Below are positions 1,711 to 36,482 of a stretch of 64,000 nt of DNA, piece after piece. Both the position numbers and the translations under genes were made by a program. The notes under the pieces were generated by a model. That model did no database searches, was not told the DNA's origin, and saw nothing but the letters and a program-made list of their open reading frames with translations. Position 1 is the first letter of the stretch, and the number at the start of each line of letters is the position of its first letter. Source of the DNA: Ostrea edulis (lineage: Eukaryota); NCBI RefSeq assembly GCF_947568905.1, contig NC_079170.1:15810001-15874000 (forward strand), read 5' to 3'.

Positions 1711-3872
1711 GACTTACTTTTTTGCACGTATAAGTTATATATAACTCTTTATTAAGCTACAATTTATATATAATATGTCTGTAATATTCAACAAGATTTT
1801 TTTTGTATCATAAACATTACGTTGTAGGTAAGTATTTTGATATTATCTACGAACATACAACATTAATTTCATATTTATATTTATCTGCACGGCTTAGTTA
1901 TAGATCTAAATAGGCTCGTCTTGTAACAAGAACTTCAATCGTCTGCGAAATCCTATAGGCCTATCTTTAGGTTCACTAACTCGTTTTAAATGTTATATTT
2001 GGGGGATGGTTATTAAACATGGGAAAAATACGATACTGTACTTTACTCAAGATATCAAAGTATAATTCGATGATCATAAAACTAGCCCATGTACTGAGCA
2101 CGGCATGTTGACGCCCAGTCCCAGCCATTTGTTTACATGTCAGATGTATACATCGACGATCTGTCAAAACAGTGGCGGATCTGGTATTTTTTTTAAAGAG
2201 AGTGAGTGTTTAAAGGCTTTAGAATTTTATTTCACACCCTTTCCGCAGCATTTCTTCTAAAGGTTGGTAAAAAAAAGAGTTAAAATGGGGGCTAGTGATT
2301 CTTGACCAACACTCCAAATTGCTATTCCTAAAACCTAAGACGAAATCTAGGTACCGCAGTATACCGTATAGGCCTATCTAGAGCAAAAAGGGACTGAAAT
2401 GTTGATCATATGTTTTTATATATAAAGCCAAGTCGTTAAATAATAAATTTAGGTAACAAACTGTAATCACTTACCTATTAACTCTGGAATTCTGGAGGAA
2501 TTGTTGTTTTAAAAATTCGTGCCGCTGAATCCGGTCCGTTTACGGTTTTGATTTTATAAATTATAACAAGAACTATTTAATTAATTTCGATATGAGCAAG
2601 ATTACAACCACGAAAAGTTTTATACAGAAAAATATTGTGTATTCAGACAACTCATTGTCCAAATATCGTCATGGTTTACGTTATTGCTCGTAGTAAAATA
2701 AGTTCAATTCAAATGCTATGTTGATCGAATTATCTCCCTATGATTGTAGAGCGCTTTCATGTTTACATTTATGTGACAGTTAAACATCAATGTATCGGCG
2801 AAATAAAAAGAACACAAGAAGATAATTGGTGTCTTTTAATTATTTTATTAGCATATTCAACATTTAAGATAAATTGGACCTAAAAGCAAAGACATACACT
2901 GTCCAAAAATCAATGTTGAACTGATTATTGTCATCACATAATTCGACGATGATCATCCGAAATCTATATTTCATTCCTCGATCATAGATGTACATAAAAC
3001 TTTTCAAAATAATTGGGATATAATTATGCTTTGAGATCCTATGTGAAAATCTATCATTTTATAATGTTTTATAAGGACACGTCTATTTTTTAAATGAGAA
3101 ACTATCATCATTCGATAAATTATGTCTGTGAAAGACCTAAAACAAGAAATTTACGTATGACCACTGTCATCGAACAAATTGAATCCAACATTCATTTGTG
3201 CAGTTTTCATTTCTTTACCCATGTCAGAATTTTTAATTTGTTCGTTGAATGTGGCCAAACTGAAATTTTGAATCAAAGTTCCAAAATTTGTCATTTTTAG
3301 AGAAAAATGTGCAAACGTCACGTGTTATGACATCTACGGCACAGTTATGACGTCACAGAATTAACATTTTGATATGAATATATTTACTACGATGTATATT
3401 GACAATATTTAGTGCAATATTTGTTTGTTAAGTTTCAGATAATTTTTCATAAAAATACAGGGCGATTTTGACCTTTCGTGGCTCTAGCTCTTTATGGTAT
3501 CCTCTATTTGATGCTTTCAACTTCATGAATGAGCAAAGTTCAATAGCTGTATAATCAAATTCTATTTTTCTGCTGATCGTTGCTGGTAATGAACTTTGCC
3601 TTTTGGCATCCTCTTAGAATGTACCACCCTTATGGAAAACAGCTAAAGGAACATACGATGTTATCATTACTATACACTCTATGTAACACTCCAACAAAAG
3701 TTCCAATAAGTAATACAGTTACCATTTAGATATTGAATAAATCTCTGATATTATTCACAATTGATTGATTGGCAATCATTGATTTGTACACAGTGGGGTG
3801 TTTATCACGATCCTGCATCTGCCTCTCTTGGAAATTATACTGCAGAAATGAATACCAGCTGGAACATAATAC

Positions 3873-5129
3873 TCAATATATATCATTCATTGAATTATTC
3901 ATAACATTGTCCGGTCGTTTTTCAAGTTCATAATATCTTTTGCTTTCATCACCTCCTCTTCGTGCTGCATTGTCGTTAAGATAACTCCCCGCTGATGATC
4001 GGCTACTTCCCCTTGAAGTTTTGTTGGTGATAGAATTATCTGAGGCACTACTCGTTCTTGAACTTGGTTTCTGAATGAAGCTTGTTGAATGAAAGTTGTA
4101 CACTTTATCACTGAGTTCATGATATACGTTCGAGCTCCTCGATCGGACACTTGTCGGGCTCTTGTCGTAAAGTGATGGTACTTGTGTTGCTTTTACAGCC
4201 ATCTGTTAACGAAAAATGTACGCGTCTACATATATCAGTAATTTAATATCTTACAATACTTCAGAGAGAGTTGTATATTACCTGAAATGATGCAAACATA
4301 CTCTTTCTCAATAAAGATCTATAATCTTTCAGTCTGTTTTAACTTCATTACCACGTGTTTCATGAGAGGTCTTAAAGTTCATGATTTTCAAACAAACTGT
4401 TAAGTCTATGCTAGCTAAGATAAGAAATTATAGTTCTTTTTACCTTGACAGTGTCTTCGACATCACTATACACATGAAAATTATCCAAAATGATTGCTTG
4501 ATTTGGGTTACTAAACATAGGTGGTGTTTGTGTGTTGCCTCTGCTAAAATATAAAAGATATTTTCCTTTTACACAGTTCGCAATATTCTGAAGGTACATC
4601 CACCGAAATAATTGATTAAAAAAAGAGCACAGAAAAAGGAATTGATTCTTTGTTTTCAAGTGACATAATGAGATAAACGGAGAAAGGAAGATATAATGAC
4701 ATCCTTCTCAGATACTGACTGTGATCTGTGCTTGTACCATCGTATGGTCAAAGTAAGTAAGATACCAACGACACAACCTGCTATTCCGCAGCTGAAGGCC
4801 AGAATCCAATCTAGACATAAGTTTGAAATGAAAATTTTAATAACCATACATACATTTATTTGCATTCATATTAATATTTACTCCTTTTTGTTTACATCAT
4901 ATCCATTTCAGGTTGATAAGAAGAAAAAAAATCCACGTATTTGAACAAAATGCATTCAAAATGTGAATGTTTACTACTAAATAATTATAAACGATAAAGC
5001 CTTATTTGACAACAGTTTGGCTGTTAAGGACTATTTTTTGTTGTGGAGAAATTTTGTAAAGATAACACTAAAAACTTTGATATCTTTTAATTATCAAACA
5101 GTGCGCTTTGGCAATTTGTTAATGAAAAG

Positions 5130-5197
<68 letters not shown>

Positions 5198-7458
5198 AAG
5201 ATATATCAAAGAGCACCAAGGTAAATTTTACAAATCGTGAGATCGTAATCTAACTAACTTTTAATTATGCAATATTTGCATAAAGTAGAATTTGTATAAT
5301 GAAATACTCGTCCTCTCTTTACATATAAAGGATTACCTGGATGGTTTGTTAAATCACTAATGCTTGAAACGCCAATTACAGTGATATTTTCTGCAAAATG
5401 ATACATAAGCAAAATGATACATCAACAATTTTTAGATCAAAGGTGAAGATAACGAACAGTGATCAATCTCATAACTCCTATAACCAATACAAAATAGATA
5501 TTTGGGCAAACACGGACCCCTGGACACACCAGAGTTCGGATCAGGTGCCTAGGAGGAGTAAGCATCCCCTGTCGACCAGTCACACCCGCCATGAGCCCTA
5601 TATCCTGATCAGGTAAACGGAGTTATCCGTAGTCGAAATCAGGATGTTAGGAGGGGCCTAACAATCGATATAAAACACGTCAGACAACATTTGATCCAAT
5701 GATAGGTTGTATTGATGGACTAGATCGTTATAACGACCATAGAATTTGCAAAATGCTGACTTCAATCGATGCTGTTGAAACTGGATCGCACGCACACGTA
5801 CGAATGCATACACATTACACACATTCTTTTTTTTTTAATCTGAGTACAATTTCAAACTCTGAACACTTTCTTGATTTTTTTCAGCCGTGTTTCTGGTCTT
5901 CGTCAGGCGTGAACCACAATTTGGATGGCTATGAACACCAAGAATTTTGATGGTTTTCTACGTCCCTCAACCTTCATAAATCGAGAGGCTGTGTATTCGA
6001 GCCATGTTCGCGCCATGATACAACAATTTAATATACTCCTTACTATATTCCTTACTATACCTAGGATATCGGTAAGATTGCTTCTTCGCCAAGCGCTTAA
6101 CACTTAGTGAGAATCATGGGCCTTTCGGATATGACATTAAAAACGGAGGTCCCATGTCACGGCAGGCGTTGGCAAGTTAAAGCACACTTACTGCCACGGC
6201 CCTGAGCGCTAACCATAAGTCTAAATCTGTTGTATATAATCTACAGCTGAATGTGTGTATCAGTATATCAGGAAAACATTCTCGACGAGACGTAAAACAA
6301 ACAATAAATTAATTAATTCATACAACGACACATAAAAAAGATTGTCTTTGAAAAACTTACCATTTTGATCTCTTAAATCACAGGTTATAGAGATCCAGGT
6401 CATTATGCACTTTGATATATTACAGTGTTTTGCGTTGAAAATGGAGGTGTTACTTCGTTGGTTCAACAGAAGCTCTAGGGTGTAGCTGACACAATGTGCC
6501 TCATCGTGTAAAGAATTGTTACTTTCAAATTGGCCGCTGCAGTTTATTGTACAGACCCTGGCTATAGAAATAAAGAAATACAGTGTTTAACGAATTTCCG
6601 AAGCTTAAGTTAAAATAATAATTACTGGTGAATGCAATATCTAAAATGATTTAGTTTGAACCATTTTCTTGAAGTTTGTCGTAAGGGCAGCGTTGTTGTG
6701 ATAATTCGTCGTGAATGTTGATTGCATCCTCAAAGCACCAGTTGCTTTTAAACCTGGGAAGTGGAATTCAGAAATCATCGTTAGGGTAACTGGGAATCAA
6801 ATTTAAAGGAAATCCATGGGTGCATATTTAAGTATGTCAATGAATTTTAGAAAGTATGGAACTCACGACGGCAAGAGAGTTGATGACATAGAGAATATAC
6901 CGCCTCCCGCTATCTTGACCCAAACCAATAAATCTGAAATAAATGTTGTCAAGAAATACTTACATATTATGAATTTATAAATGACAAGCTTGCCATATAT
7001 ATAAAAAAATTGTAGGATGACAACAATATGATTTGTATAAGATCTGCATGTTTTCAAAAGAAAACGACCCTGGATGTTGAGGAATGCAATAAAATGTTGT
7101 GCAGAAATTTCTATTTTTATATTCAAGCAACAATATAGTGTCGATACATGTATATTTATTAAAATCTCTACGTTCAGAATAAAGATGACTGCAAAACAAA
7201 GCATATATACTAAAGTATTAATAATATAAGCTTGGAAAAAATGAAACGCCTCATGATATATTACTCAGTTCTTTTGATTTCGTACTTTACCATGAATGGT
7301 AAATTCTAATAGAATTATGGATAAATTTAATCAGTGCATTCCAAAAAACTGATACATTTTTCATTATTAAATTGACTAGGAAAAATATATTTCCTGATCT
7401 TCAGGTAATTGATTAAATGACACCAATAGTGAAAAAATTGGGGTTTTGTGGGGGGAAG

Positions 7459-7506
<48 letters not shown>

Positions 7507-8930
7507 GTTATCGATACAGTATGTATGAAATGTGAAGATAACGAACAGTCCCTTATGTAGTATACATATATCCCTGTGAGTTCGAAGCAAAAGACACCAC
7601 TGAGTCGTCCACTTCTGCTTCATACTTAGATATTTTATTGAAAGTAGACATTAATGGCAAACTGACTGCTCAACTGTATATGACAAACGGGATGATTTCA
7701 GCTTCTCCATCGTCAACTTCCCATATTTATGTAGCAATATTCCATTATCACCTGCATATGGTCTTTATATCTCTCAATTGATTTGATAGGCAAGAGCTTG
7801 TTCTGTATTTGGTCAGTTTTTAAATCAAGGCCAGTTACTGACAAACAACTTGATGGTACAGGGGTTTCAACAGTCTCGATTGAAGTAGCATTTTGCAAAT
7901 TCCATGGTCGTTATAACGAACCAGTTCGTCAATACAACCTATTATTGGGTCAAATGCTCTCTGACGTGTTTCATACAAATTGTTAGGTCGTTCTTGGCAC
8001 ACTGATTTTGACTACGGATAACTCCGTCTACCTGATAAGGATATAGGGCTCACGTCAGATGAGACCTGTCGACAGGGATGCCTGCTCCTCCTAGGCACCT
8101 GATACCACTTCTGGTTTGTCCAGGGGTCCGTGTTTGCCAAACTCTGTATTCTGTATTGTTTATAGGAGTTATGAGATTGATCACTCTCCCTACCAAACCC
8201 TAGCTTGTTTCTGCTATAATGATATATTTTACATTAAAATTGATGACGAATTTACTGAATGCCAACACTGGATTTTCACTCAAATCTTTCGTCTTGCATA
8301 AATAGACACGAAGTTCGGTGTTTATATGACCGTATCTTTTTGTTTTTGATGTATATACTATGTACATTTATAATAAATATATCAATTTTTGCCGTGCATT
8401 TTTCAGGCAAATCTTTATGATATTTCATTAAACTTCACCTAAATGGATTTCCCGCTATTTTCTGCAGCCATGAAATTTGCTCTTGATGTACAAAAAATAG
8501 TGTGCCCGTTTTATTTCATAGAATTAACACTATCGACAAACAAATAAATAAACATAACACATTCAACATGGATTGAATATTCCTTTGCGCGTGGAACAAA
8601 AATGAAAAATTTGTCAATGCCCTCGAGAAATTGATTCATTTATGACTTTGCAATCAATATGATTGTGTCCATATTTATACGCTTAGTTATGCTTAGTTGT
8701 ATAAGATATGTCATCATTTTATTTTATAATCCTCCCTTAAAATCTAACCACCCACTGTCGGTTATGTTTGATTACAATTATGATGCTCTCACTGTGCGAG
8801 AAATACAAACCTAGAATTGTTAGAAGCTACTGCGTGAACAGAAAGATTCATTTTCAACTTTTTAATTTTTACACTTTATTTCTAATTAGTGACAATTGTA
8901 CTTACATAAACATCGCCTTAGATATGTCAT
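3873..8930 (-). CDS. Gene A1: single-pass type I membrane protein, Cys-rich ectodomain plus Tyr-motif tail, about 301 aa, 7 exons
   Basis: Exons: 8930-8906, 6933-6867, 6753-6662, 6561-6361, 4810-4720, 4543-4444, 4202-3873. All introns are GT-AG with phases 1,2,1,1,2,0 and the frame is open throughout: MTYLRRCLYLLVWVKIAGG...WCFEDAINIH...RCP...VCTINC...HCVSY...HCNISKC...TC...DWILAFSCGIAGCVVGILLTLTIRWYKHR...VYSDV...VYHEL...YYEL...NDIY*. Confidence 0.85.
5135..5196. repeat. (TA)n microsatellite
   Basis: Direct reading; the paralogous copy at 26350-26400 is shorter. Confidence 0.95.
5440..5790 (-). mobile_element. Penelope-like retroelement 3' fragment (paralogous copy at about 26646-26996)
   Basis: AAGGTGAAGATAACGAACAGTGATCAATCTCATAAC...GGAGGAGTAAGCATCCCCTGTCGACC...; the reverse complement encodes the RT C-terminus also seen at 7620-7986 and 43478-43728. 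Confidence 0.7.
6090..6232 (+). mobile_element. Mollusc SINE fragment (Meta/MESC-type central domain; copy at about 27296-27438)
   Basis: GGGCCTTTCGGATATGAC...AAAACGGAGGTCCCATGTCACGGCAGGCGTTGGCAAGTTAAAG resembles 18085-18325 and 46045-46290. The family name is from memory and was not searched. Confidence 0.55.
7459..7508. repeat. (GT)n microsatellite
   Basis: Direct reading; the paralogous copy is at about 28666-28703. Confidence 0.95.
7560..8185 (+). mobile_element. Penelope-like RT C-terminal fragment in intron 1 of A1 (truncated copy at about 28745-29092)
   Basis: Encodes YLDILLKVDINGKLTAQLYDKRDDFSFSIVNFPYLCSNIPLSPAYG...FCKFHGRYNEPVRQYNLLLGQMLSDVFHTNC, with an internal stop. Confidence 0.8.
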
Positions 8931-9335
8931 TGTCTCTTTCCAAATATCGCCTCAATTGCTTAATTTTTACGATGGAAATTTCTAATAGTAAGGAAAAGGT
9001 ATTAACACAGCTTTTTACACATCAAAAGCCATGGAAAACACTGAACAAGTTCTTCCTGGTCAAACAAGATATATGCGAGTTTGTGGAATTACCCATCCAT
9101 GGAGTTAATACTGCGGAAGCAATTAAAAGTTAAATGTTTCTTTCCAGAGGTTAATGTTACATTATTTTTCTATTTCTATAGGAACCATATCTCCATCTAC
9201 ATCAGAAGCATTTGCAAAAGTCAGGAATCCTGCTATTTCTGTTAGATCAAGGGAAGGGATTATTCTCACTGCTGATAGATCACACAAAAGAGAATTTTCT
9301 TGTTCTATTTCATTTTTCACGGAATGGATGATAAA

Positions 9336-9860
9336 GTGAAGATAATGAACGGTGACCAATCTTATAAATACCATACGATTACAAAATTGAGAGTAGGTCA
9401 AATCCTTGGGTATACTAGGTGTGGGATCTGATGTCTAGGAGGAGTAAGCATCCCCTGTTGACTTGTGACACCCACCGTGAGCCCTATATTTGGATCAGGT
9501 CAATGGAGTAATCCGAAGTCAAAATCAGTATGTAAATGATGACCTAGCAATTAGTATGAAATACGTCAGACAGCGTTCTGCCGTATAATAGGTCGTACTT
9601 GCAAATTAGAACATCATAATGACATAGCATTTGCAAAGTGCTGACTTTAAACGAGACAGTTGAAATACCTGAAACATCAACATTACTTGTCATTAATCTC
9701 TCTCGAGTTAAAAATCGATCATACGCAGAAGATTTTTCCGCATATCAATCAGTTGAGAGATGTAAAAACCATCTTCAGGTGATGAGGGAATATTACTACA
9801 TGACTATGGGAAGGTGATGCTGGAATAGGTGATGTCATCCCGTTTGTCGTGAATTGATCA
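9336..9860 (-). mobile_element. Penelope-like fragment (paralogous copies at about 23043-23560, 30183-30700, 36668-37150)
   Basis: Same family as 5440-5790; it follows the 70-bp unit region in every paralogous block. Confidence 0.7.
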
Positions 9861-9904
9861 GATATGGAAGACTCTATTTTCTGATATTATCACCTACTTT
9901 CGGA

Positions 9905-10033
9905 AGGTCGGTGGTCTCTTCCCAGGTGCATTGTATCCGGGTTCTCTCTTCCACCAACAAAAACTGGGCGCCACCATATAACTGAAAAATTGTTGAATAG
10001 GGCGGAAAACATCAAATCAAATCAAATCAAATC
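9905..10033 (+). mobile_element. SINE 3' end with (AAATC)n tail (copy at about 30750-30878)
   Basis: ...TCCACCAACAAAAACTGGGCGCCACCATATAACTGAAAAATTGTTGAATAGGGCGGAAAACATCAAATCAAATC... It is absent from the paralogous blocks at about 23.6 kb and 37.2 kb, so it is a later insertion. Confidence 0.65.
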
Positions 10034-11109
10034 ATATTATCACCGGTGTTAGAACGACTTTACTCAATCTGAGAGAGTCATAGAGCTTTTTTGTCTTTCA
10101 CTGCTGCAACGTCTTTGATTGTTTATGTGATGACTATTTTGAATGACTTTTAGTGTCGGTCAAACAGTAATTAATGATCTTAGACGGATAGTCTAAAATT
10201 GTCAGTTAGATTTTAATGAAAGTGGTGAAAGTGCTGTTAGCAGTTCTCAAAAATGTGTAAAAGGGTATTTTCTAAAAGACTTCCGGATTCTTGACAATTA
10301 AATATAACATTTCTATTTCCCAATCCTAAACAATTTTTCATTCACTTAAGAAATGAAAGTTATAATTCTATATCTGATGCATGTATCAAATGAAAAACTG
10401 GACGGAAAACTTCTGAAAGGAAATTTTCCGTTTCACAATTTGTCAGCCGTATTGAATTTCTCGGTGCTTTTACCAACGCATGTATTGTACATGGTGTAGA
10501 AGATGTACACCAAAATGTGTACACCTTTGCATTTGATTACGAAAAGGTGTACACTTTGTGGTCGGTGTAGACAAATCAAGCACACCCTTAGTAAAGGAGA
10601 CTGTAAAACAACGAATTGCAATATATCAAATACATACCATACAGAATTCCGAAAATTCAAAAGGTTAAAATCTCGCTAAATTATAAAACTATGATATTTG
10701 ACATATATTGCGCTATCTTTCTTTGACAGACTAACTGCATACGTTAAGAATATAGACAATGTAACGCTATAATGTAAAGTTCATATCTTAATGTCAATGA
10801 TATTGACATGAGATGCATTGAAGGATATATTGCACTGGTCAATGAGAAACTACACACGAGTTATTGAAACTCGTAATTGTAGAATCCATGTCTATCGCAA
10901 CGGGGACTCTAATCCACGAGCTTAACTTCTCCAAGCGTGGGATGTAACTCTGATTTCAATAAATGCTCCATGGACCTCATCACCAATAAATAACATTTAG
11001 CCATGGGTGTATGTGTTCTTTTGTCCGCTCATTTGATTAGCTGATTATTAAGATTTTTACGCCCTCTCAAAAATGGAAAGGTCAAGCTAACAAACTGTTA
11101 TCGATGAAA

Positions 11110-11430
11110 GGTGAAAATAACGAAAAGTAATCAATATCATAACTCCTATAAGGAAATCAAAATAAAGAGTAGGGCAAACACGGACCTTTGGAACCAGGTG
11201 CCTAGGAGGAGTAAATATCTTCTGTCGACTGGTCACACTCGTTGTGAGCCCTATATCTCGATCAGACAAACGGGGTAATTTGTAGTCAGAATCAGTGTGT
11301 CACGATTGGTTTACCAATCGCAGAATTTGATGCAATGACAGTTTGTATAAACTATTGGCAAACTAGTTTGTTATAACGACCATAGAGTTGGAAAGATTGT
11401 GACAGTAAACGAGGCTGTTGAAACCCCTGT
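11110..11430 (-). mobile_element. Penelope-like 3' fragment (copy at about 31950-32270)
   Basis: GGTGAAAATAACGAAAAGTAATCAAT...GGTGCCTAGGAGGAGTAA...ATAACGACCATAG. Confidence 0.65.
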
Positions 11431-11819
11431 AGCATTTTTTGGAATGGCCGGATGTTTTTCACATGCTTCAATCATATACACTCTGGTCAATCTATTAGTG
11501 ATGGGCCTTTATCGTGCTAAAATCCTCTATGACATGGGATCTCAGTTTTAAATATTCGAAATACCCATGACCTATACTTTTAATGCCAAACACTAGGAAT
11601 AGTTACTACCCATATTTAACCATATGCATTCTCAATTTCTCATCAAACATCCTCACTACTGAAGAACACAATACATTGGTCTACATTTGCAAATCTAGAT
11701 CTTATGCTAAAAAGGGCTTCATACGGACGTCAAATCACAAAATCAAACAAACAATGCAGGATTTATGACATTTTACTGCACATATCTAAAGCTACGTATA
11801 AATCATAATGTTTGAACCT

Positions 11820-14800
11820 TCAGCTACAACCATTATCGTTTTGTATTAATAAATATTCTTTTCCCAATGCATAGTATTTATCACTTCCTGCACTACCTGT
11901 TGGCGAAGTTTTCGTCCGGTCCTTTGACTTTATAGAAGAACTCTCTGCATGAAATAAAAATGAATCTAAAGAAGGATTTCCTGAATGGATGATAACGAAT
12001 TTCCCAAATGAGCTGCCACTTTGAAGTTCGCTCTCCTTTCTCTCGAGTTTACAGCTGTATGCTAGGACATCGCTGGACAAAAACACACTTACATCCATGC
12101 CCATACTCTTCCTCTCTTCCAATCCACCTAGGTGGTGGTAAATGTTTTCTCATGATCTAGAACTCGATGAACTATCATCTTTGTAAGAAGGAACTTGAAT
12201 AGCTTTATTCATCACCTAGTGAGAGAAGAAAAATCACAAAATTCAAATCAATGAAATATTTTTCTCGTTTGGATTACGACCAATTAATGAAAATGAACAG
12301 TGATTAATCTCATAAATATCATGGCAATCTAACATCAAGGACATGCCCAATGCACATTTCCTATACATGATACAGGTGAGATCGAGTGACTAGGAGGAAT
12401 AAGCACCCCGTTTTGACCGGTCACACCCGTCGTGAGTCCTGTATCTTGATTATGTAAATGGAGTCAGCCGTATTCAAATCGACACAGAAAGAATGTAGAC
12501 TACATTTGACTTTATGACATGGAGTATTATTATACCACAGTATGAGAATTCCACGCAACGCGTAATGTGATTAGTCTAGACGGTCACGTGCCAGGGATGA
12601 CAACACTTCATATCTCCCTCTCAAACATCATATCTCCCTATCATATTTAGCCCTTGGGCAGACTCGTGCAATTTCCATAAATTTAACGTCAAGGTAGACG
12701 AAGTCTATTGTGACGTCACAATAAGTCATTCTACTTTCACAGTTCGTAAGGCAGAAAATATGTGGGTCTCTAATACACAGTTGAATCGTATGGTTTTGGT
12801 TGATACAAAAACAAGCAAGTAAATTAGCATTTAAGGAGAATGGAAATACAAAAACTGGTTATCATATCACTGTATTTCGTATGATTTTTCTTGGGTGAAT
12901 AAATCTTCATATCTCCCTCACTATCATGCAATAAATGTATAATAGCAAATAAGATGGTTTTAACAACCGTAGCCTTTACAAAGTGTTGCCTGTAAACAAG
13001 ATAGACAAGACTTGTCCATGTCTTCGCTTTTAAAGATCACCATAAAAACATTTCTTTTAAAATCTATGACTCGGAATAATGTACTCTAAAATTATCTTCG
13101 ATACCAGCATATTCTGCCTCTAATGGATTGATGATGACTCTGCCCTCAGGTAAACCACTTCTCTCTTGGTGACTAGGCTGATAGGATACTGGTGACGGGA
13201 ATCGATTGCTAAACAAATAAAATCATTGATACTATTTGATAATTTTAAATGTAATCACTGAGTCAAAACATCATGTTTCTAGATAGCGCAGATTTCATGG
13301 AAGTTTTCTAAATCTAAATTTTTCCTAATTTATTGAAACGCTGAACAGTTGTGTTGTATGTACATAAAAATGAAGCCACGGACTATGGAAATTAAACTAA
13401 AATGGGAAAATGGAGGTTGTGAAACAACAAAAATGAAATAATTCCACAAGATACATATAACTTTTTTATATGACGATCAGTTTTCTGTGTATATGGGAAG
13501 AGAAATGATATATGTACTAAACTAGTAGGAAACAGTTTAATTGGTGAAGCAAAATATAAGAGAATCATGAATCTCTTGTAAAATATCAGAGAATCATGAA
13601 TCTCTTGTAACAAGTGCATATATATTTTCAAATGAGGGAATGCCTTAGAGGACAGGACATACTCTTTGTGCCGATTCAGGAGGTTGTAAATCACACGTAG
13701 GATTCCAATTCCAAAGAGACACCCGACAACGAAGCAGGTCACAATTAGGACAGCAATTATACCTGGACCTTGGATTAAATAAAAGGAAAGTTCTTACAAA
13801 CGCTAAATGGTTATCAAATATATCAGAATGATTTTGATATGAAATTGGAATGTAATAACTTACCAAGACATTCATTTTCATTCTCGTTGTTGTGTTCGAA
13901 TATATCGAGACGGTCTGTATTCTTGCCCTGCGTCCAACATTCAATGATTATGTTTTCGATTATGCACTTTTCAATACCACATAGACTGTCTGTCATCTGC
14001 GTTGATTTCGTTTCATTATAGTGAAAATTGATTTTGTATTCAACACAATGAGATTGCTCAAATAGATCATCATTGAATACATATATTGCTTTGCATGACA
14101 CCGAACATGTATTGTTACCTGAAAAAAAAATATATCGTGTTGATGTCATTGTTTTCTTTCATCAAAAAGTGGCAAATAATGAAAGAAATCGTTATGAAAT
14201 GATCCTACCTTTGTGTCTATTTGATATATCCGGTAGAGGACAGTTTTGGTCGGGCATCGTTGCATGCACTTGTAAAGCTTGTTCCAAACATATTTTTCTG
14301 AAGTTTTACAAAACATATTGGTACCGTATAAGTTTTACATTGAAAAGAAACGTATGAGGTGAAAACAAATGTGTATGTATCTAATATGATCGTATTAAAC
14401 AAGAATTAGAATCTTATATATCGTTTAAACACACCTTTCATTTTGGGGAAAGCACAGGACTTTCTTAGGAATATCCATCGTGAAGCACAGAATAACACCT
14501 GCGTTGTATTGAAATAATGTTTGGATGAAATAAAGATGAAATGAATTCTGATAAAAAATAAAGATGTAAAAGATTGAATCATAATCAATAGATCCCATAA
14601 CGGATTTATGCTACAGAAAATAGTTTTTTGTTTGTAAATCAGGATTTAGGTTATGAAAGGCCTGGTTTAAAACCAGAATTTCACAAATATAACAGGTCAT
14701 TAAGTCGAATGCTCTCTGACGTGTTTCATACCAATTGTTAGACGGATCTTTACATACAGAGTTTTACTACGAATTACTCAGTTTATCTGATAAGATATAG

Positions 14801-15366
14801 GGCATATAACATTTATGACCGTTGAACAGACAATATTTACTCCCCCTAGACATCTGCTCCCAATTCTGGTGTTTCCAGGGGCCCGTGTTTACCAACTCAT
14901 AATTTTATATCATTTATTGGATTCAATATAACAAACAGTGAGGAATCACACAATTCTATATTACACTGCATCATATCACTTTGTGAATCATCTCAGATCA
15001 CTAAATAAAGTTAGTAGTGTTATCCACTGAAACGCAGAATTCATGGCTCTGAGGGACATCTTCAGATTGATTCATTCATGACTTTGCAATCAATATGATT
15101 GTGTCCATATTTATACACTTAGCTATACTTAGTTGTATAAGGTATCTCATCATGTTATTTCATAATCCTCCCTTAAAAGCCAACCACCCACTGTCGGTTG
15201 TGCTTGATCAGAATTATAATGCTCTCACTGTGCGAGCAATACAAATCTATAATCGTTAGAAGCTATTGCGTGAATAGAAAGATTCATTTTCAACTTTTAA
15301 ACTTCCACACGTTATTTCTAATTAGTGACAATTGTACTTACATAAACATCGCCTTAGATCTGTCAT
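11820..15366 (-). CDS. Gene B1: family member with a premature stop in the last exon (242 aa truncated; 352 aa if read through)
   Basis: Exons: 15366-15342, 14498-14435, 14297-14209, 14118-13864, 13768-13663, 13208-13085, 12215-11820. Phases match A1. MTDLRRCLCVILCFTMDIPKKVLCFPQNERKICLEQALQVH...NCP...TCSVSC...HCVEY...LCGIEKC...ECW...NECLGPGIIAVLIVTCFVVGCLFGIGILR...EYAGIEDNFRVMNKAIQVPS...SRS* with TGA at 12152-12150 (CGA in B3). Confidence 0.8.
14690..14910 (+). mobile_element. Penelope-like 3' fragment in intron 1 of the B genes (copies at about 35515-35735, 40535-40760)
   Basis: GAATGCTCTCTGACGTGTTTCATACCAATTGTTAG...CCAGGGGCCCGTGTTTACCAACTC. Confidence 0.65.
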
Positions 15367-17639
15367 TGTCTCTTTCCAAATATCGCCGCGATTGCTTAAT
15401 TTTTACGATGGGAATTTCTAATAGTAAGGAAAAGGTATCAGCACAGCTTTTTCCACATCAAAAGCCATGGAAAACACTGAAAAAGTTCTTCCTGGTCAAA
15501 CAAGAAATACGCGAGTTTGTGGAATTACCCATGCATGGAGTTAATACTGCGGAAGCAATTAAGAGCAGTTTTCTGTAAGGACCAAAATATTGCGGCACGC
15601 ACTGAAAAATTTTCCACTATAAATGTCGTCATTCAATTGAAATACATAAACTCTTTAAAAAATATTTGTACACCTATTCTGAAAAGTGACTCGTTTCCAT
15701 AGCAACAGGCTATTTAAATAGAAAAAACAGGAAAAATGGAGTTTTGGGAATTTTTCACTTCAATTTATTATATCGCGAATAATTGACAAGGAATTTTATG
15801 CTACATCCTGAGACAAAGTAGTAACAATCTTGATCAGTATGTAAATTTATCTGGAAATTGTATCATTATTGTACCACAGCTCATAATTCAGACTCAAATG
15901 ACCAGTTTTACTGTGTACTTTGACCAACTCCTGAGCAAAAAGCCAGCCATATGGAAGATAATAAAATATAAATTTAAAAAGAAGGTAAATCAGTTATATA
16001 ATGCAGATAAAAAAAATCAATGGGCAAATTACATTTTATAATAGAAATTTGGCATGGAAAATATGAATTTGTTGAATTTGCACATTGAGTTATCTCCCTT
16101 TGCGGAATTTCTAATGTAGGAGATAATAAGTAGTGTTATTGTTAACAGGAGGGAAAGGAAAGAAATGCAGAAAACATGTGTTTTTAGGGTATTTTAAACA
16201 TCTTTGACCATTACTATATATGTACTGGATGTATTCAAGTGTGAAGGAGTTGATAAATACACACTGCATGTAGTGAAGAGGGTTTCCTGAAAAATTAACT
16301 TCATTGAATATGAATTCAAAGCTCAGCTTGTGTCTACATGTGTACATATATGCACCCGATTTACGCTGTTATATGGTTCGTTCTGTATTTTCCCATTTAT
16401 TGACGGACGCTTGCAACCGACATGTTTAATCAACAAACACTGCTACTACGAAAAAAGTGTATTCATGCCAGTTGGAGAACACAGGTTTACGTAAGTACTG
16501 CTTGTAGATACATTGATAATGTAACATTACCTCACAATGACACGATCTGTTTCTCAGTAAATTAGTGATCAAGTAAATGCATGCAAAATTCATGTTATTT
16601 CACTGGACCAGGGTGAAAATATAATAAATATTTTCTAATGGAGATAATGCTTTTGAGACAGAAGGAGGGAGGGGGGTAAAAGACGGGCGAGGGGGTTGTA
16701 TTGTAATCTTAAAATAAGTAATATACCTGACTGGTTTATTTAACATTAACAATGTTAATTTCACCTACTTTTCAATATTTAAGGTTAAGATAAATGTTAT
16801 ATTTATTCTAATAGTGTTCAAAACATTTGTTCATCACGTACGTTAAAAACAGATTGTTCTATTCATGTGAATTATGAAAATGAAACTTTCAGTTTCTCTC
16901 CCCCCCCCCTCTCTCGTGATATAATAACAGTGATGATAATGCTTTTAAAAAAGAAACAATGTCTGTAAATTATTTCAATGACCACATGCCTTATATAGTT
17001 TGTGATGAATTTCATTAAATTTTGACAAATTGTGCGTTTTTCTTCTTCTAGGATTTGTGTTGGAAAATGGAGATTCTAGAGAATTTATCGAATTCAAGTG
17101 ACAACAATAATAAGGTACATGTACATGTATATGCTATTGTATTACTTGAAATGTGCACCTGTATAATATGTGTACAGTTGTTCCATTGACAATGCATATC
17201 TATATAAATAATAAACTATCCCTTCTCATAATTATTTACCATAGACCCAAATTTCAAAATAATTTGCTCAAGGTCACAGATAACAGAGAATAGAATCATT
17301 TGTTGCTGCATCACTTTTTGAATTAGTTAATGTCAAGGTTTCAAAATATTTAGAGTTGTAGCTTTGTATCAGAGAGGCATGAATCAATACACTAAATGCA
17401 CAAACATGTACTTACAGGGGGACCAGAAAGTGTGCATGAACCATAAACTGAGGTCACTTGCAGATATCATTAAAAGATGTGGTCTATATTGACTTTTTTA
17501 AGTGTATGATACCATAACATCACACATACTGCGGGGTGATATGGGGGGGGGGGGGGGGCGTATGTAATCCAAGACCGTCAGATGTTCGAGGTTAATATTG
17601 GTTGGTTATGGTTGTTTGTTTTACATTCTATTAAAAGAA

Positions 17640-21108: not shown

Positions 21109-22998
21109 GTCAGGAATCCTGTCATTTCTGTTAGATCAAGGGAAGGGATTATTCTCACTGCTGATAGATCACACAGAAGTCAGGAATCCTGCTATTTCTG
21201 TTAGATCAAGGGAAGGGATTATTCTCACTGCTGATAGATCACACAGAAGTCAGGAATCCTGCTATTTCTGTTAGATCAAGGGAAGGGATTATTCTCACTG
21301 CTGATAGATCACACAGAAGTCAGGAATCCTGCTATTTCTGTTAGATCAAGGGAAGGGATTATTCTCACTGCTGATAGATCACACAGAAGTCAGGAATCCT
21401 GCTATTTCTGTTAGATCAAGGGAAGGGATTATTCTCACTGCTGATAGATCACACAGAAGTCAGGAATCCTGCTATTTCTGTTAGATCAAGGGAAGGGAGT
21501 ATTCTCACTGCTGATAGATCACACAGAAGTCAGGAATCCTGCTATTTCTGTTAGATCAAGGGAAGGGATTATTCTCACTGCTGATAGATCACACAGAAGT
21601 CAGGAATCCTGCTATTTCTGTTAGATCAAGGGAAGGGATTATTCTCACTGCTGATAGATCACACAGAAGTCAGGAATCCTGCTATTTCTGTTAGATCAAG
21701 GGAAGGGAGTATTCTCACCGCTGATAGATCACACAGAAGTCAGGAATCCTGCTATTTCTGTTAGATCAAGGGAAGGGATTATTCTCACTGCTGATAGATC
21801 ACACAGAAGTCAGGAATCCTGCTATTTCTGTTAGATCAAGGGAAGGGATTATTCTCACTGCTGATAGATCAAACAAAAGTCAGGAATACTGCTATTTCTG
21901 TTAGATCAAGGGAAGGGATTATTCTCACTGCTGATAGATCAAACAAAAGTCAGGAATCCTGCTATTTCTGTTAGATCAAGGGAAGGGATTATTCTCACTG
22001 CTGATAGATCACACAGAAGTCAGGAATCCTGCTATTTCTGTTAGATCAAGGGAAGGGATTATTCTCACTGCTGATAGATCACACAGAAGTCAGGAATCCT
22101 GCTATTTCTGTTAGATCAAGGGAATGGATTATTCTCACTGCTGATAGATCAAACAAAAGTCAGGAATCCTGCTATTTCTGTTAGATCAAGGGAAGGGATT
22201 ATTCTCACTGCTGATAGATCACACAGAAGTCAGGAATCCTGCTATTTCTGTTAGATCAAGGGAAGGGAGTATTCTCACCGCTGATAGATCACACAGAAGT
22301 CAGGAATCCTGCTATTTCTGTTAGATCAAGGGAAGGGATTATTCTCACTGCTGATAGATCACACAGAAGTCAGGAATCCTGCTATTTCTGTTAGATCAAG
22401 GGAAGGGAGTATTCTCACTGCTGATAGATCACACAGAAGTCAGGAATACTGCTATTTCTGTTAGATCAAGGGAAGGGAGTATTCTCACTGCTGATAGATC
22501 ACACAGAAGTCAGGAATCCTGCTATTTCTGTTAGATCAAGGGAAGGGATTATTCTCACCGCTGATAGATCACACAGAAGTCAGGAATCCTGCTATTTCTG
22601 TTAGATCAAGGGAAGGGATTATTCTCACTGCTGATAGATCACACAGAAGTCAGGAATCCTGCTATTTCTGTTAGATCAAGGGAAGGGATTATTCTCACCG
22701 CTGATAGATCACACAGAAGTCAGGAATCCTGCTATTTCTGTTAGATCAAGGGAAGGGAGTATTCTCACTGCTGATAGATCACACAGAAGTCAGGAATACT
22801 GCTATTTCTGTTAGATCAAGGGAAGGGATTATTCTCACTGCTGATAGATCACACAGAAGTCAGGAATCCTGCTATTTCTGTTAGATCAAGGGAAGGGATT
22901 ATTCTCACCGCTGATAGATCACACAGAAGTCAGGAATCCTGCTATTTCTGTTAGATCAAGGGAAGGGATTATTCTCACTGCTGATAGATCACACAAAA
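21109..22998. repeat. 70-bp minisatellite, 27 tandem units
   Basis: Unit CAGGAATCCTGCTATTTCTGTTAGATCAAGGGAAGGGATTATTCTCACTGCTGATAGATCACACAGAAGT starts at 21111, 21181 ... 22931 (period 70). There are a few recurrent point variants and no spacers. Confidence 0.97.
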
Positions 22999-24711
22999 GA
23001 GAATATTCTCGTTCTATTTTATTTTTCACGGAATGGATGATAAAGTGAAGATAATGAACAGTATACTTATCTTATAAATACCACAAGAATACAAAACTGA
23101 GAGTAGGTCAACTACTGATCCTAGGATATACTACGGGAGGGATCTCGTGACTAGGAAGAGTAAGCATCCCCTGTTGACTGGTGACACCCACCGAGAGCCT
23201 TATATTTGGATCAGGTAAATGGAGTAATCCGAAGTCAAAATCAGTGTGCAAATGATGGTCTAGCAATTAGTATGAAACACGTCAAACAGCGTTCTGCCGT
23301 ATGATAGGTCGTACTTGCAAATTAGAACATCATAATGAAATAGCATTTGCAAAGTGCTGACATTAAACGAGACAGTTGGAATACCTGAAACATTATTTGT
23401 CTTTAATCTGTAGCGATTTAAAAATCGATCATACGCAGGACATCTTTCCGCATATCAATCAGTTGAGAGATGTAAAAAACATTATGAGGGAATATTACAA
23501 GATGACTATGGGAAGGTGACGCTGGAATAGGTCGTTTGTCATGAATATCAGTGGTCTGATTGACGTTAGTGTCTATGTTCAATAAATAATCCAACTATTG
23601 ATCAGATATGGAAGACTCTATTTTCTCATATCATCACCGGTGTTAGAACGACTTTACTCAATTTGAGAGATTCATAAGAGCTTTTTTGTCTGTCTTTGAT
23701 TATTTATGTGATAACTGTTTTGAATGGATTTTAGTGTCGGTCAAACAATAATCAATGAACTTAGACGGATAGTCTAAAATTGTCAGTGACGAAAGTGCTG
23801 TTAACATTTTTCAGAAATGTGTAGAAGGGTATTTTCTAAAAGACTTCCGGATTCTTGACAATTAAATACAAAATTTCTATTTCCCAATCCTAAACAATTT
23901 TTCATTCACTTAAGAAATGTAACTTATCATTCTTTATCTGATGCATATATCAAATGAAAAACTGGACGGAAAACTTCCGAAAGGAAATTTTCCGTCTCAC
24001 AATTTTTCAGCCATATTGAATTTCTCAGTGCATTTACCAATGCATGCCATGTATATGGTGTAAAAGATGTACACCAAAACGTGTACACCTTTGCACTACG
24101 GAAAGATGTACACTTTTTAGTTGGTGTAGACAAATCTAGCCCGCCGTTAGTAAAGGAGTCTGTAAAATATCACGTACGTCTTGTCAGTCTAACCAGTTGG
24201 TATATGCATAGATCGAATAGAAGAAGATAGTCAGGGAAACAGCTTATGTCATCAAATTATATCTGGATAAGCAAACTAAAAAAATTAACGATGCATGCCG
24301 ACTCAATGATTATCATACAAAGATTAAGAATTGATATTGAAAATTTTCACTCATATATGCTCCTTTTAAACTGGATAAGTCCAGAGTGGAACATTATGGA
24401 TCATATTCAAATAAATTGATAGACGCGTGCACGGATCAGTTTAATGTTATATTTCTGACCCAAATATACGTAGGTGTGTCCTGCAATGAATTCTAAAAAA
24501 TAATAAATGACATTAAATGGAGGAATTGAATCAGGTCGTGTGCATCTTGTACTTTGTGTATAATTATGGCAAATTGATAATTTCCAATTCTAAATATATA
24601 ACTAATTAGTGAAATGATCATTAACGATACAAAACAATTTAAATGCAAGATCATTTTAGCCCTAATGATAAAAACAGGCATTGACCTACATCTATTTGAT
24701 AAAGGAAATTG

Positions 24712-26345
24712 ATGGTATCCTCTATTTGATGCTTTCAACTTCATGAATGAGCAAAGTTCAATAGCTGTATAATCAAATTCTATTTTTCTGCTGATCTTTG
24801 CTGGTAATGAACTTTGCCTTTTGGCATCCTCTTAGAATGTACCACCCTTATGGAAAACAGCTAAAGGAACATACGATGTTATCATTACTATACACTCTAT
24901 GTAACACTCCAACAAAAGTTCCAATAAGTAACTGTTACCATTTAGATATTGAATAAATCTCTGATATTATTCACAATTGATTGATTGGCAATCATTGATT
25001 TGTAAACAGTGGGGTGTTTATCACGATCCTGCATCTGCCTCTCTTGGAAATTATACTGCAGAAATGAATACCAGCTGGAACATAATACTCAATATATATC
25101 ATTCATTGAATTATTCATAACATTGTCCGGTCGTTTTTCAAGTTCATAATATCTTTTGCTTTCATCACTTCCTCTTCGTGCTGCATTGTCGTTAAGATAA
25201 CTCCCCGCTGATGATCGGCTACTTCCCCTTGAAGTTTTGTTGATGATAGAATTATCTGAGGCACTACTCGTTCTTGAACTTGGTTTCTGAATGAAGCTTG
25301 TTGAATGAAAGTTGTACACTTTATCACTGAGTTCATGATATACGTTCGAGCTCCTCGATCGGACACTTGTCGGGCTCTTGTCGTAAAGTGATGGTACTTG
25401 TGTTGCTTTTACAGCCATCTGTTAACGAAAAATGTACGCGTCTACATATATCAGTAATTCAATATCTTACAATACTTCAGAGAGAGTTGTATATTACCTG
25501 AAATGATGCAAACATACCCTTTCTCAATAAAGATCTATAATCTTTCAGTCTGTTTTAACTTCATTACCACGTGTTTCATGAGAGGTCTTAAAGTTCATGA
25601 TTTTCAAACAAACTGTTAAGTCTATGCTAGCTAAGATAAGAAATTATAGTTCTTTTTACCTTGACAGTGTCTTCGACATCACTATACACATGAAAATTAT
25701 CCAAAATGATTGCTTGATTTGGGTTACTAAACATAGGTGGTGTTTGTGTGTTGCCTCTGCTAAAATATAAAAGATATTTTCCTTTTACACAGTTCGCAAT
25801 ATTCTGAAGGTACATCCACCGAAATAATTGATTAAAAAAAGAGCACAGAAAAAGGAATTGATTCTTTGTTTTCAAGTGACATAATGAGATAAACGGAGAA
25901 AGGAAGATATAATGACATCCTTCTCAGATACTGACTGTGATCTGTGCTTGTACCATCGTATGGTCAAAGTAAGTAAGATACCAACGACACAACCTGCTAT
26001 TCCGCAGCTGAAGGCCAGAATCCAATCTAGACATAAGTTTGAAATGAAAATTTTAATAACCATACATACATTTATTTGCATTCATATTAATATTTACTCC
26101 TTTTTGTTTACATCATATCCATTTCAGGTTGATAAGAAGAAAGAAAAAACACGTATTTGAACAAAATGCATTCAAAATGTGAATGTTTACTACTAAATAA
26201 TTATAAACGATAAAGCCTTATTTGACAACAGTTTGGCTGTTAAGGACTATTTTTTGTTGTGTAGAAATTTTGTAAAGATAACACTAAAAACTTTGATATC
26301 TTTTAATTATCAAACAGTGCGCTTTGGCAATTTGTTAATGAAAAG

Positions 26346-26403
<58 letters not shown>

Positions 26404-28663
26404 AAGATATATCAAAGAGCACCAAGGTAAATTTTACAAATCGTGAGATCGTAATCTAACTAACTTTTAATTATGCAATATTTGCATAAAGTAGAATTTT
26501 TATAATGAAATACTCGTCCTCTCTTTACATATAAAGGATTACCTGGATGGTTTGTTAAATCACTAATGCTTGAAACGCCAATTACAGTGATATTTTCTGC
26601 AAAATGATACATAAGCAAAATGATACATCAACAATTTTTAGATCAAAGGTGAAGATAACGAACAGTGATCAATCTCATAACTCCTATAACCAATACAAAA
26701 TAGATATTTGGGCAAACACGGACCCCTGGACACACCAGAGTTCGGATCAGGTGCCTAGGAGGAGTAAGCATCCCCTGTCGACCAGTCACACCCGCCATGA
26801 GCCCTATATCCTGATCAGGTAAACGGAGTTATCCGTAGTCGAAATCAGTATGTTAGGAGGGGCCTAACAATCGATATAAAACACGTCAGACAACATTTGA
26901 TCCAATGATAGGTTGTATTGATGGACTAGATTGTTATAACGACCATAGAATTTGCAAAATGCTGACTTCAATCGATGCTGTTGAAACTGGATCGCACGCA
27001 CACGTACGAATGCATACACATTACACACATTCTTTTTTTTTTAATCTGAGTACAATTTCAAACTCTGAACACTTTCTTGATTTTTTTCAGCCGTGTTTCT
27101 GGTCTTCGTCAGGCGTGAACCACAATTTGGATGGCTATGAACACCAAGAATTTTGATGGTTTTCTACGTCCCTCAACCTTCATAAATCGAGAGGCTGTGT
27201 ATTCGAGCCATGTTCGCGCCATGATACAACAATTTAATATACTCCTTACTATATTCCTTACTATACCTAGGATATCGGTAAGATTGCTTCTTCGCCAAGC
27301 GCTTAACACTTAGTGAGAATCATGGGCCTTTCGGATATGACATTAAAAACGGAGGTCCCATGTCACGGCAGGCGTTGGCAAGTTAAAGCACACTTACTGC
27401 CACGGCCCTGAGCGCTAACCATAGGTCTAAATCTGTTGTATATAATCTACAGCTGAATGTGTGTATCAGTATATCAGGAAAACATTCTCGACGAGACGTA
27501 AAACAAACAATAAATTAATTAATTCATACAACGACACAGAAAAAAGATTGTCTTTGAAAAACTTACCATTTTGATCTCTTAAATCACAGGTTATAGAGAT
27601 CCAGGTCATTATGCACTTTGATATATTACAGTGTTTTGCGTTGAAAATGGAGGTGTTACTTCGTTGGTTCAACAGAAGCTCTAGGGTGTAGCTGACACAA
27701 TGTGCCTCATCGTGTAAAGAATTGTTACTTTCAAATTGGCCGCTGCAGTTTATTGTACAGACCCTGGCTATAGAAATAAAGAAATACAGTGTTTAACGAA
27801 TTTCCGAAGCTTAAGTTAAAATAATAATTACTGGTGAATGTAATATCTAAAATGATTTAGTTTGAACCATTTTCTTGAAGTTTGTCGTAAGGGCAGCGTT
27901 GTTGTGATAATTCGTCGTGAATGTTGATTGCATCCTCAAAGCACCAGTTGCTTTTAAACCTGGGAAGTGGAATTCAGAAATCATCGTTAGGGTAACTGGG
28001 AATCAAATTTAAAGGAAATCCATGGGTGCATATTTAAGTATGTCAATGAATTTTAGAAAGTATGGAACTCACGACGGCAAGACAGTTGATGACATAGAGA
28101 ATATACCGCCTCCCGCTATCTTGACCCAAACCAATAAATCTGAAATAAATGTTGTCAAGAAATACTTACATATTATGAATTTATAAATGACAAGCTTGCC
28201 ATATATATAAAAAAAATTGTAGGATGACAACAATATGATTTGTATAAGATCTGCATGTTTTCAAAAGAAAACGACCCTGGATGTTGAGGAATGCAATAAA
28301 ATGTTGTGCAGAAATTTCTATTTTTATATTCAAGCAACAATATAGTGTCGATACATGTATATTTATTAAAATCTCTACGTTCAGAATAAAGATGACTGCA
28401 AAACAAAGCATATATACTAAAGTATTAATAATATAAGCTTGGAAAAAATGAAACGCCTCATGATATATTACTCAGTTCTTTTGATTTCGTACTTTACCAT
28501 GAATGGTAAATTCTAATAGAATTATGGATAAATTTAATCAGTGCATTCCAAAAAACTGATACATTTTTCATTATTAAATTGACTAGGAAAAATATATTTC
28601 CTGATCTTCAGGTAATTGATTAAATGACACCAATAGTGAAAAAATTGGGGTTTTGTGGGGGGA

Positions 28664-28706
<43 letters not shown>

Positions 28707-34660: not shown

Positions 34661-36193
34661 TACATCAGAATGATTTTGATATGAAATTGGAATGTAATAA
34701 CTTACCAAGACATTCATTTCCATTCTCTTTGTTGTGTTCGAATATATTAAGCTGGTCTGGATTGTTGCCCTGCGTCCAACATTCAATGGTTATATTTTCG
34801 ATTATGCACTTTTTAATATCACATAGACTGTCTGTCATCTGTGTTGATTTCATTTCATTATAGTGAAAATTGATTTTGTATTCAACACAATGATCTTTAT
34901 CGAATAGATCATTATTGAACACATATATTGCTTTGCATGACATCGAACATGTATTATTACCTAAAATAAAAAAAAATATATCGTGTTGATGTCATTGTTT
35001 TCTTTCATCAAAAAGTGGCAAATAATGAAAGAAATCGCTATGAATAGATCCTACCTTTGTGCCTATTTGATAGATCCTGTAGAGGACAGTTTTGGTCGGC
35101 CATCATTGCATGCACTTGTAAAGCTTGTTCCAAACATATTTTCCTGAAGTTTTACAAAACGTATTGAAAAGAAAAGTATGAGGTGAAAACAAATGTGTAT
35201 GTATCTAATATGATCGTTTTAAACAAGAATTAGAATCTTATATATCGTTTAAACAAACCTTTCATTTTGGGGAAAGCACAGGACTTTCTTAGGAATATCC
35301 ATCGTGAAGCACAGAATAACACCTGTGTTGTATTGAAATAATGTATGGATGAAATAAAGATGAAATGAATTCTGTTGAAAAATAAAGATGTAAAAGATTG
35401 AATCATAATCAATAGATCCCATAACGGATTTATGCTACAGAAAATAGTTTTTTGTTTGTAAATCAGGATTTAGGTTATGAAAGGCCTGGTTTAAAACCAG
35501 AATTTCACAAATATAACAGGTCATTAAGTCGAATGCTCTCTGACGTGTTTCATACCAATTGTTAGACGGATCTTTACATACCGATTTTTACTACGAATTA
35601 CTCAGTTTATCTGATAAGATATAGGGCATATAACATTTATGACCGTTGAACAGAGAATATTTACTCCCCCTAGACATCTGCTCCCAACTCTGGTGTTTCC
35701 AGGGGCCCGTGTTTACCAACTCATAATTTTATATCATTTATTGGATTCAATATAACAAACAGTGAGGAATCACACAATTCTATATTACACTGCATCATAT
35801 TACTTTGTGAATCATCTCAGATCACTAAATAAAGTTAGTAGTGTTATCCACTGAAACGCAGAATTCATGGCTCTGAGGGACATCTTCAGATTGATTCATT
35901 CATTACTTTGCAATCAATACGATTGTGTTCATATTTATACACTTAGCTATATTTAGTTTTATAAGGTATTATCTCATCATTTTATTTCATAATCCTCCCT
36001 TAAAAGGTAACCACCCACTGTCGGTTGTGCTTAATCACAATTATGATGCTCTCACTGTGCGAGCTATACAAACCTATAATCGTTAGAAGCTATTACGTGA
36101 ATAGAAAGATTCATTTTCAACTTTTAAACTTCCACACTTTATTTCTGATTAAGGACAATTGTACTTACATAAACATCGCCTTAGATATGTCAT
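32662..36193 (-). CDS. Gene B2: mosaic family member with the same premature stop as B1
   Basis: Exons: 36193-36169, 35322-35259, 35143-35055, 34960-34706, 34610-34505, 34050-33927, 33057-32662. TGA at 32994-32992. Exons 5-7 match B1, exons 2-4 match B3, and exon 1 is A-type (MTYLRRCL). Confidence 0.8.
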
Positions 36194-36482
36194 TGTCTTT
36201 TTCCAAATATCGCCTCGATTGCTTAATATTTACAATGAAAATTTCTAATAGTAAGGAAGAGGTATCAGAACAGCTTTTTCCACATCAAAAGCCGTGGAAA
36301 ACACTGAACAAGTTCTTCCTGGTTGAACAAGAAATATGCGAGTTTGTGGAATTACCCATCCATGGAGTTAATACTGCGGAAGCAATTAAAAGTTAAATGT
36401 GTCTTTCCAGAGGTTAATGTTACATTATTTTTCTATTTCTATAGTAACCATATTTCCATCTATATCACAGGAGCATTTGCAA

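Follow-up and report, generated by a model that had tools for sequence, protein, structure and literature searches.

Vertebrate paired receptors (KIR, Siglec and the CD28-family dimers) are type I membrane proteins with a variable glycosylated head, a membrane-proximal cysteine and a tail with tyrosine motifs, and their genes lie in tandem arrays in which tail-less copies stand beside full-length copies with the same head. Bivalves have no adaptive immunity and depend on greatly expanded, lineage-specific surface receptors. Most receptor catalogues start from domains already known (Ig, lectin, LRR, EGF and TIR), so that families such as the eight-cysteine one described here are invisible in them. 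The locus analyzed was a 64-kb stretch of the Ostrea edulis genome (contig NC_079170.1, 15,810,001 to 15,874,000; hereafter the window, in whose own numbering all positions are given). It is AT-rich animal DNA with 30-38% GC and zero N, and it carries on the minus strand several copies of a gene family whose exons 3 and 4 encode a cysteine-rich ectodomain. These exons probably represent the ectodomain of an undescribed, so far oyster-only family of type I membrane glycoproteins, with a head that falls in no described domain family. The overall architecture is familiar, a glycoprotein that crosses the membrane once, with a head rich in Cys and tyrosine motifs in the tail; what appears new is the head domain.

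The cysteine framework and the oyster family

Gene A1 was read from the sequence, as a gene model, on the minus strand: seven exons encode a type I membrane protein of 301 amino acid residues. Exon 3 (6662-6753; AG acceptor, GT donor, 30 codons) provides the N-terminal third of the ectodomain, with Cys1 and Cys2 on either side of a predicted alpha-helix, and it aligns with the CLExA..I...CP segment of the relatives. Exon 4 (6361-6561; AG acceptor, GTAAGT donor, 67 codons) contains Cys3 to Cys8, four long predicted beta-strands and four NxS/T sequons. The two exons join in phase 1 and give 97 residues between a signal-peptide-like N-terminus and the transmembrane (TM) helix.

Further copies in the window were located by tblastn and self-blastn. 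Eight cysteines were found to align in the A, B and C types, two in exon 3 (C-x15-C around a helix-like CLExAxxIH...CP) and six in exon 4, with the overall spacing C-x15-C-x11/14-C-x3-C-x12/15-C-x21/22-C-x4-C-x8-C. The sequence-only reading, which had first pointed to this ectodomain, gave coordinates for exons 3 and 4 together (6361-6753) that proved exact, the splice borders being canonical, and all of its cysteine motifs were recovered: VCTINC, HCVSY, HCNISKC and TC in A, TCSVSC, HCVEY, LCGIEKC, ECW and NEC in B (copy B1), and PCRYTC, GCIGY, PCGIKQC, TCW and NEC in C. Its count stood in part. NEC does occur in B and C, but the three types have eight cysteines in common rather than seven, which makes NEC the ninth. 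The sequons and the poor conservation between cysteines that it had described were also borne out, with four sequons in A, two in B3 and five in C, and an exon 4 identity among A, B and C of just 29-32% with invariant Cys columns.

Four of the Cys columns were invariant or nearly so in 33-40 sequences with a mean column identity of 25%; fewer rows reach the remaining four, which were conserved in the rows that do. Conservation of the framework across 33-40 relatives at 25% identity lies far beyond chance. Covariation among the Cys positions was not informative. Between copies B1 and B3 there were 15 amino acid differences and zero Cys changes. The ratio of nonsynonymous to synonymous substitution rates (dN/dS) for this pair, calculated from few sites, was 0.5 for exon 4 and 0.96 for exon 3, which gives no overall support for positive selection. 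Amid the divergence, the alternation of hydrophobic residues in the strands was retained, as were the sequons near CVGYNISF and C-x-I-S/T-x-C.

A profile built from four translated exon 4 sequences was used for an exhaustive search of 1.84 billion representative proteins of any length. At an expectation value (E) below 1e-3 there were 40 matches, about 31 of which were short or full-length relatives sharing the Cys framework. Long proteins of eukaryotic type were absent from the matches, and this search therefore gave no evidence that other Cys-rich oyster ectodomains contain the module. All of the named relatives were "uncharacterized" oyster proteins from Ostrea, Crassostrea and Saccostrea (Ostreidae), and full-length NCBI gene models were found in the three genera: the full-length A-type XP_048741406.2 of Ostrea edulis (LOC125655237, 275 residues), two isoforms of Saccostrea cucullata LOC134281766 (XP_062620180.1 and XP_062620181.1) and XP_078309949.1 of Crassostrea virginica (LOC111105983). 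They share with the window genes the 8-Cys framework, the position of the exon 3/4 join and the motifs of both TM segment and tail, with 32-45% identity in the ectodomain; none of them has been named, studied or placed in a domain family, and a literature search for these LOC identifiers or such a family found no paper. In word-index searches, the relative P0014 matched only itself, the alignment matched 19 unnamed Logan open reading frames (ORFs), which add depth and no taxonomy; the searches brought 12 more unnamed ORFs to the set of relatives. The exon 4 ORF of B3 was also found in a public protein collection (P0001).

Clear signal peptides were seen in the relatives P0014, P0002 and L001. 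No intron interrupts the Logan contigs L001 and L002 at the exon 3/4 join or further on, and the join is exactly as modelled; they are therefore transcripts of relatives. L001 encodes a complete signal peptide that ends about eight residues before Cys1. In L002 (430-1175), a B/C-type relative, exon 4 continues into cytoplasmic exons in a shifted frame, apparently without the normal TM exon; this contig may come from a pseudogene or represent an isoform that lacks the TM segment. The locus itself is present in independent DNA runs from three studies, with no differences listed within exon 4.

The other exons of A1 complete the type I topology. Exon 1 (8906-8930), present in the model only, consists of ATG plus eight codons and a GTAAGT donor in matching phase. 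Exon 2 (6867-6933) is hydrophobic and signal-peptide-like, with phases compatible with exons 1 and 3. Exon 5 (4720-4810) encodes the TM helix with the small-residue motif SCGIAGCVVG, followed by basic residues; the TM segment has 21 residues with a mean Kyte-Doolittle value of 2.36, and the basic residues behind it agree with the positive-inside orientation. Exon 6 (4444-4543) is cytoplasmic and contains the conserved tyrosine motif 1 (YSDV), and exon 7 (3873-4202) encodes a cytoplasmic tail rich in Ser, in which motifs 2 (NVYHEL) and 3 (RYYELEK) precede the stop codon. The window genes belong to a conserved, oyster-restricted family of small proteins (about 275-330 residues) with type I receptor-like architecture, a Cys-framework ectodomain and conserved sequons, present in the window as tandem and segmentally duplicated copies.

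Known domains and the predicted fold

Single exons, five relatives of full or nearly full length and all 33 members of the alignment were scanned with Pfam. Nothing reached the gathering score, and none of the families at E<=1 was common to two or more of the 33 members. DUF7497 (E 0.097), Neur_chan_LBD (E 0.016), Peptidase_C47, Ig_TR130_2nd and Phage_FRD3 each matched a single member far under the cut-off and were rejected. The sole PDB sequence match to the family profile, 6l77_A (MS5a), was marginal (E 0.028), covered 41 columns without a Cys match and was judged to be due to chance; language-model neighbours gave no usable match. EGF, sushi/CCP, WSC, C-type lectin, Ig and TNFR Cys-rich domains were found neither at E<=1 in the Pfam scans nor among the structural neighbours, and the marks of a Ly6/uPAR three-finger domain (a UPAR_LY6 match, an all-beta fold and a C-terminal CCxxxxCN) were not observed.

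AlphaFold2 was run with the family alignment on two targets. The A-type model (P0014:24-140) reached a mean predicted local distance difference test score (pLDDT) of 79.9 and a predicted template modelling score (pTM) of 0.71, with four of five models at 76-80; the B/C-type model (P0002:26-143) reached a pLDDT of 78.2 and a pTM of 0.67. The two models are not independent, because most of the alignment is common to both, and A1 exon 4 is one row in the alignments under each. The same order of elements was predicted in both: a short strand ending at Cys1, a helix of 12-14 residues, Cys2, a short helix and four long strands. In these models Cys3 and Cys4 stand at the start of long strand 1 and Cys5 at the start of strand 2, Cys6 and Cys7 flank the hairpin between strands 3 and 4, and Cys8 lies near the end of strand 4. 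The Asn/Ser/Thr-rich stalk with Cys9 was predicted to be disordered (pLDDT about 35).

When the models were compared with the PDB by Foldseek, nothing was found below E 0.27 for the A-type or below E 0.30 for the B/C-type. In the ESM Atlas no match exceeded a template modelling score of 0.44 (A-type) or 0.42 (B/C-type). The A-type model had no match among the viral structures of BFVD (best E 0.006, template modelling score 0.31), and there is therefore no sign of a herpesvirus-derived or virus-captured domain. The proposal in the sequence-only reading of a novel disulfide-rich module was tested by domain and fold searches of the kind it had called for, and the Pfam, PDB sequence and fold-search outcomes support it for a predicted fold with putative disulfides; the EGF, Ig, Ly6/uPAR, sushi, WSC and C-type lectin domains to which it could not match the spacing are all in Pfam, and none of them matched. 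As far as the models can be trusted, these results support a head domain outside all described families, for which no structural neighbour could be detected. Absence of a match does not prove a new fold.

The explanation that survives best beside an undescribed family is a very divergent known extracellular fold (an Ig-like/HYR sandwich, a cystatin-like beta-alpha-beta4 fold or a fragment like the PAC/ASIC/ENaC sheet) beyond the reach of the tools used, and we regard it as unlikely. The nine remaining profile matches favour it at first sight: they were long bacterial HYR-repeat proteins with whole-sequence E-values of 3e-7 to 6e-4 with the exon 4 profile. HYR in these adhesin-like proteins resembles the oyster module in length, in its run of Cys and in the alternating residues of its beta-strands, and its C-G-I...F-x-C segment is similar to the oyster C-x-I-x-x-C...F-E-C. 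Taken singly, however, the repeats scored 13-15 bits with per-domain E-values in the thousands, and the alignment straddles two neighbouring repeats. The link to HYR (PF02494) was rejected because the E-values came from the sum of weak repeats and the hhalign probability was 6.7%. Pfam HYR matched none of the single exons, full-length relatives or 33 alignment members; moreover, HYR is all-beta, whereas the oyster module has a long predicted helix and is not modelled as an all-beta Ig-like sandwich.

The ectodomains of PAC/TMEM206, ASIC, ENaC and FaNaC recurred at the top of both VIA lists as the best structural neighbours of the two models, which also speaks for a known fold. They share with the models long twisted antiparallel strands, a packed helix and a disulfide-rich extracellular setting, and by the predicted structures they are the closest shape and not a relationship. 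Cystatins have the same order of strand, helix and four strands as the oyster models; a cystatin-like fold (a five-stranded antiparallel sheet around one helix) was not obtained by structural alignment.

Tail motifs and gene copies

The small-residue motif of the TM segment was conserved across types and genera in the full-length alignment. Three conserved motifs were found in the tails of the A, B and C types and of the proteins from Ostrea and Saccostrea, namely Y-[SAC]-D-[IV], N-[IV]-Y-x-x-L and Y-[YFH]-x-L-E. Together with the signal peptide and the TM helix, these three YxxΦ motifs suggest a receptor role at the level of sequence. When the tails of A1, B3, C, P0014 and P0041 were searched by regular expression for the immunoreceptor tyrosine-based inhibitory, switch and activation motifs (ITIM, ITSM and ITAM), no canonical one was found at the conserved positions, only YxxΦ; the single ITIM-like match, VIYNLL of B3, adjoins the membrane and is unconserved. 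Because the tail is without these patterns, the signalling idea is weak and the analogy with immune receptors is one of working only.

The full set of features (8-Cys spacing, TM helix and three YxxΦ motifs in the tail) was found in A1, A2, B3 and C; B1 and B2 have the ectodomain and TM features with truncated tails. A2 (exons 3-4 at 27567-27959, minus strand) is a duplicate of A1 at an offset of +21206 with an identical ectodomain protein, and all seven exons are open with canonical splice sites in both. On the same strand, exons 3 and 4 of B1, the B of the sequence-only reading, lie at 13864-14297 (exon 3 14297-14209, exon 4 14118-13864). Those of B2 (34706-35143) encode an ectodomain protein identical to that of B3, whose exons lie at 39727-40164 (exon 3 40164-40076, exon 4 39981-39727) and contain nine Cys including the membrane-proximal NEC. 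The C copy, also on the minus strand, lies at 47932-48796 (exon 3 48796-48714, exon 4 48210-47932) and likewise has nine Cys. The ectodomain and TM exons of B1, B2 and B3 are intact. In B1 and B2 an in-frame stop in the last exon (12152-12150 and 32994-32992) was found just before NIYHHL, ahead of motifs 2 and 3, while B3 is open there. The tail-truncated B1 and B2 beside the open B3 fit either a decoy/signalling pair or recent decay.

A second alternative accepts the new fold and denies a signalling receptor: the protein would be a surface glycoprotein for adhesion or of the coat, would be shed or act as a decoy, or would work as a carrier in endocytosis, with YxxΦ used for sorting only. We consider it improbable, somewhat more so than an overlooked known fold. 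YxxΦ motifs also fit AP-2 sorting signals, and the lack of canonical immunoreceptor motifs, the stops of B1 and B2 behind an intact ectodomain, and the absence of a TM-encoding continuation in P0002 and the L002 transcript all agree with it. On the other side, conservation of the three tyrosine motifs and their flanks extends over the A, B and C types and over three genera, in tails that have otherwise diverged; a generic sorting signal would not require so much.

The copies lie in duplicated DNA. A segmental duplication of about 12 kb was observed, in which 3491-15562 is repeated at 24709-36389 with 98-99% identity and each block holds one A and one B gene. A satellite array (21109-22999; 70-bp unit, 27 copies, 97% matches) lies between the duplicated blocks. 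The B-type segment 39443-40903 is 99.1% identical to 34422-35882 and only 94.3% to 13580-15058; this difference suggests a recent event of duplication or gene conversion that was confined to the 5' half of B2 and B3. The sequence upstream of B1 (15066-15562) is 92.6% identical to 8630-9126, the exon 1 region of gene A, and the sequence upstream of B3 differs, in agreement with the exon 1 swap reported earlier for this DNA. Another, degraded member is represented at 63851-64000 by its last exon, which has about 52% identity with the tail of C and is broken by stops; the remainder of this gene lies beyond the window end. The A1 introns contain very high-copy repeats at 5366-5887 and 7454-8323 (summed contig depth 1e4-1e7, against about 10-300 in the flanks), and rearranged joints are numerous there; tracts of (GT)n and (TA)n lie at 7447-7517 and 5124-5207, respectively, and related copies were found by self-blastn at 43605-43969 and elsewhere in the window.

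Proposed function and comparison with known receptors

Besides the absence of canonical signalling motifs, several points weigh against an undescribed receptor family at this locus. The alignments under the models are shallow (33-40 close relatives), the N-terminal third with its strand and helix rests on just five alignment rows, and the low best Z may partly reflect model error. For exons 1 and 2 of B3 and C the candidates showed phase conflicts, and one phase-consistent B3 exon 2 and one C candidate are unconfirmed; the B3 candidate (about 40343-40280), in phase with exon 3, may add a tenth Cys (VLCFP) near the predicted signal-peptide cleavage region. Finally, RNA evidence was found for the locus in none of the six runs that hold it (three studies), which are all genomic because their contigs cross intron borders. 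A reading of the copies as relics that make no functional protein, whether pseudogenes or ORFs that arose by chance in the duplicated DNA, would agree with this lack of RNA, with the stops in the last exon of some copies and with the intron repeats, but it is very improbable given seven open exons with canonical splice sites in A1 and A2, full-length gene models in three oyster genera, spliced transcripts in relatives, invariant Cys and a B1 versus B3 dN/dS of 0.5 in exon 4.

For the preferred reading, an undescribed oyster family of type I glycoproteins, the following mechanism is proposed. By the models, a core of about 95 residues would fold independently into a strand, a helix, a short helix and four antiparallel strands. 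Its eight cysteines most likely form four internal disulfides that would staple the helix onto the sheet, and the variable surface between them may serve as the binding face. The fast-diverging inter-Cys residues, with the kept strand pattern and sequons, would fit a glycosylated recognition head. The odd ninth Cys in the stalk of B and C probably forms an interchain bond and hence a covalent dimer. To go by their sequences, the three YxxΦ motifs of the disordered tail could couple ligand binding to phosphotyrosine signalling or endocytosis. A bolder version, which we hold to be doubtful and offer tentatively, is that the 8-Cys head is a new fold that arose in oysters as the fast-evolving recognition unit of tandemly expanding receptors, with B3 and B2 as signalling and decoy partners, a counterpart of paired receptors on a scaffold that is neither Ig nor lectin.

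The family offers a clonable target: a domain of about 95 residues with a confident predicted structure and no known match, a tail with conserved tyrosine motifs, and a locus in which duplication and conversion are active. Should the fold be confirmed, a new disulfide-stapled extracellular scaffold and a candidate recognition family for oyster disease research would be obtained; if a deeper search ties the head to a known fold, the case becomes one of ordinary, if extreme, divergence.

Compared with KIR, Siglec and the CD28-family dimers, the oyster proteins differ in a head that is neither Ig nor lectin and in a tail with no canonical ITIM, ITSM or ITAM, and the parallel is one of how such proteins may work. 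Within that limit they appear alike in type I topology, in the variable glycosylated head followed by a membrane-proximal Cys and a tyrosine-motif tail, and in their tandem arrangement, where tail-less copies are found beside full-length copies with the same head.
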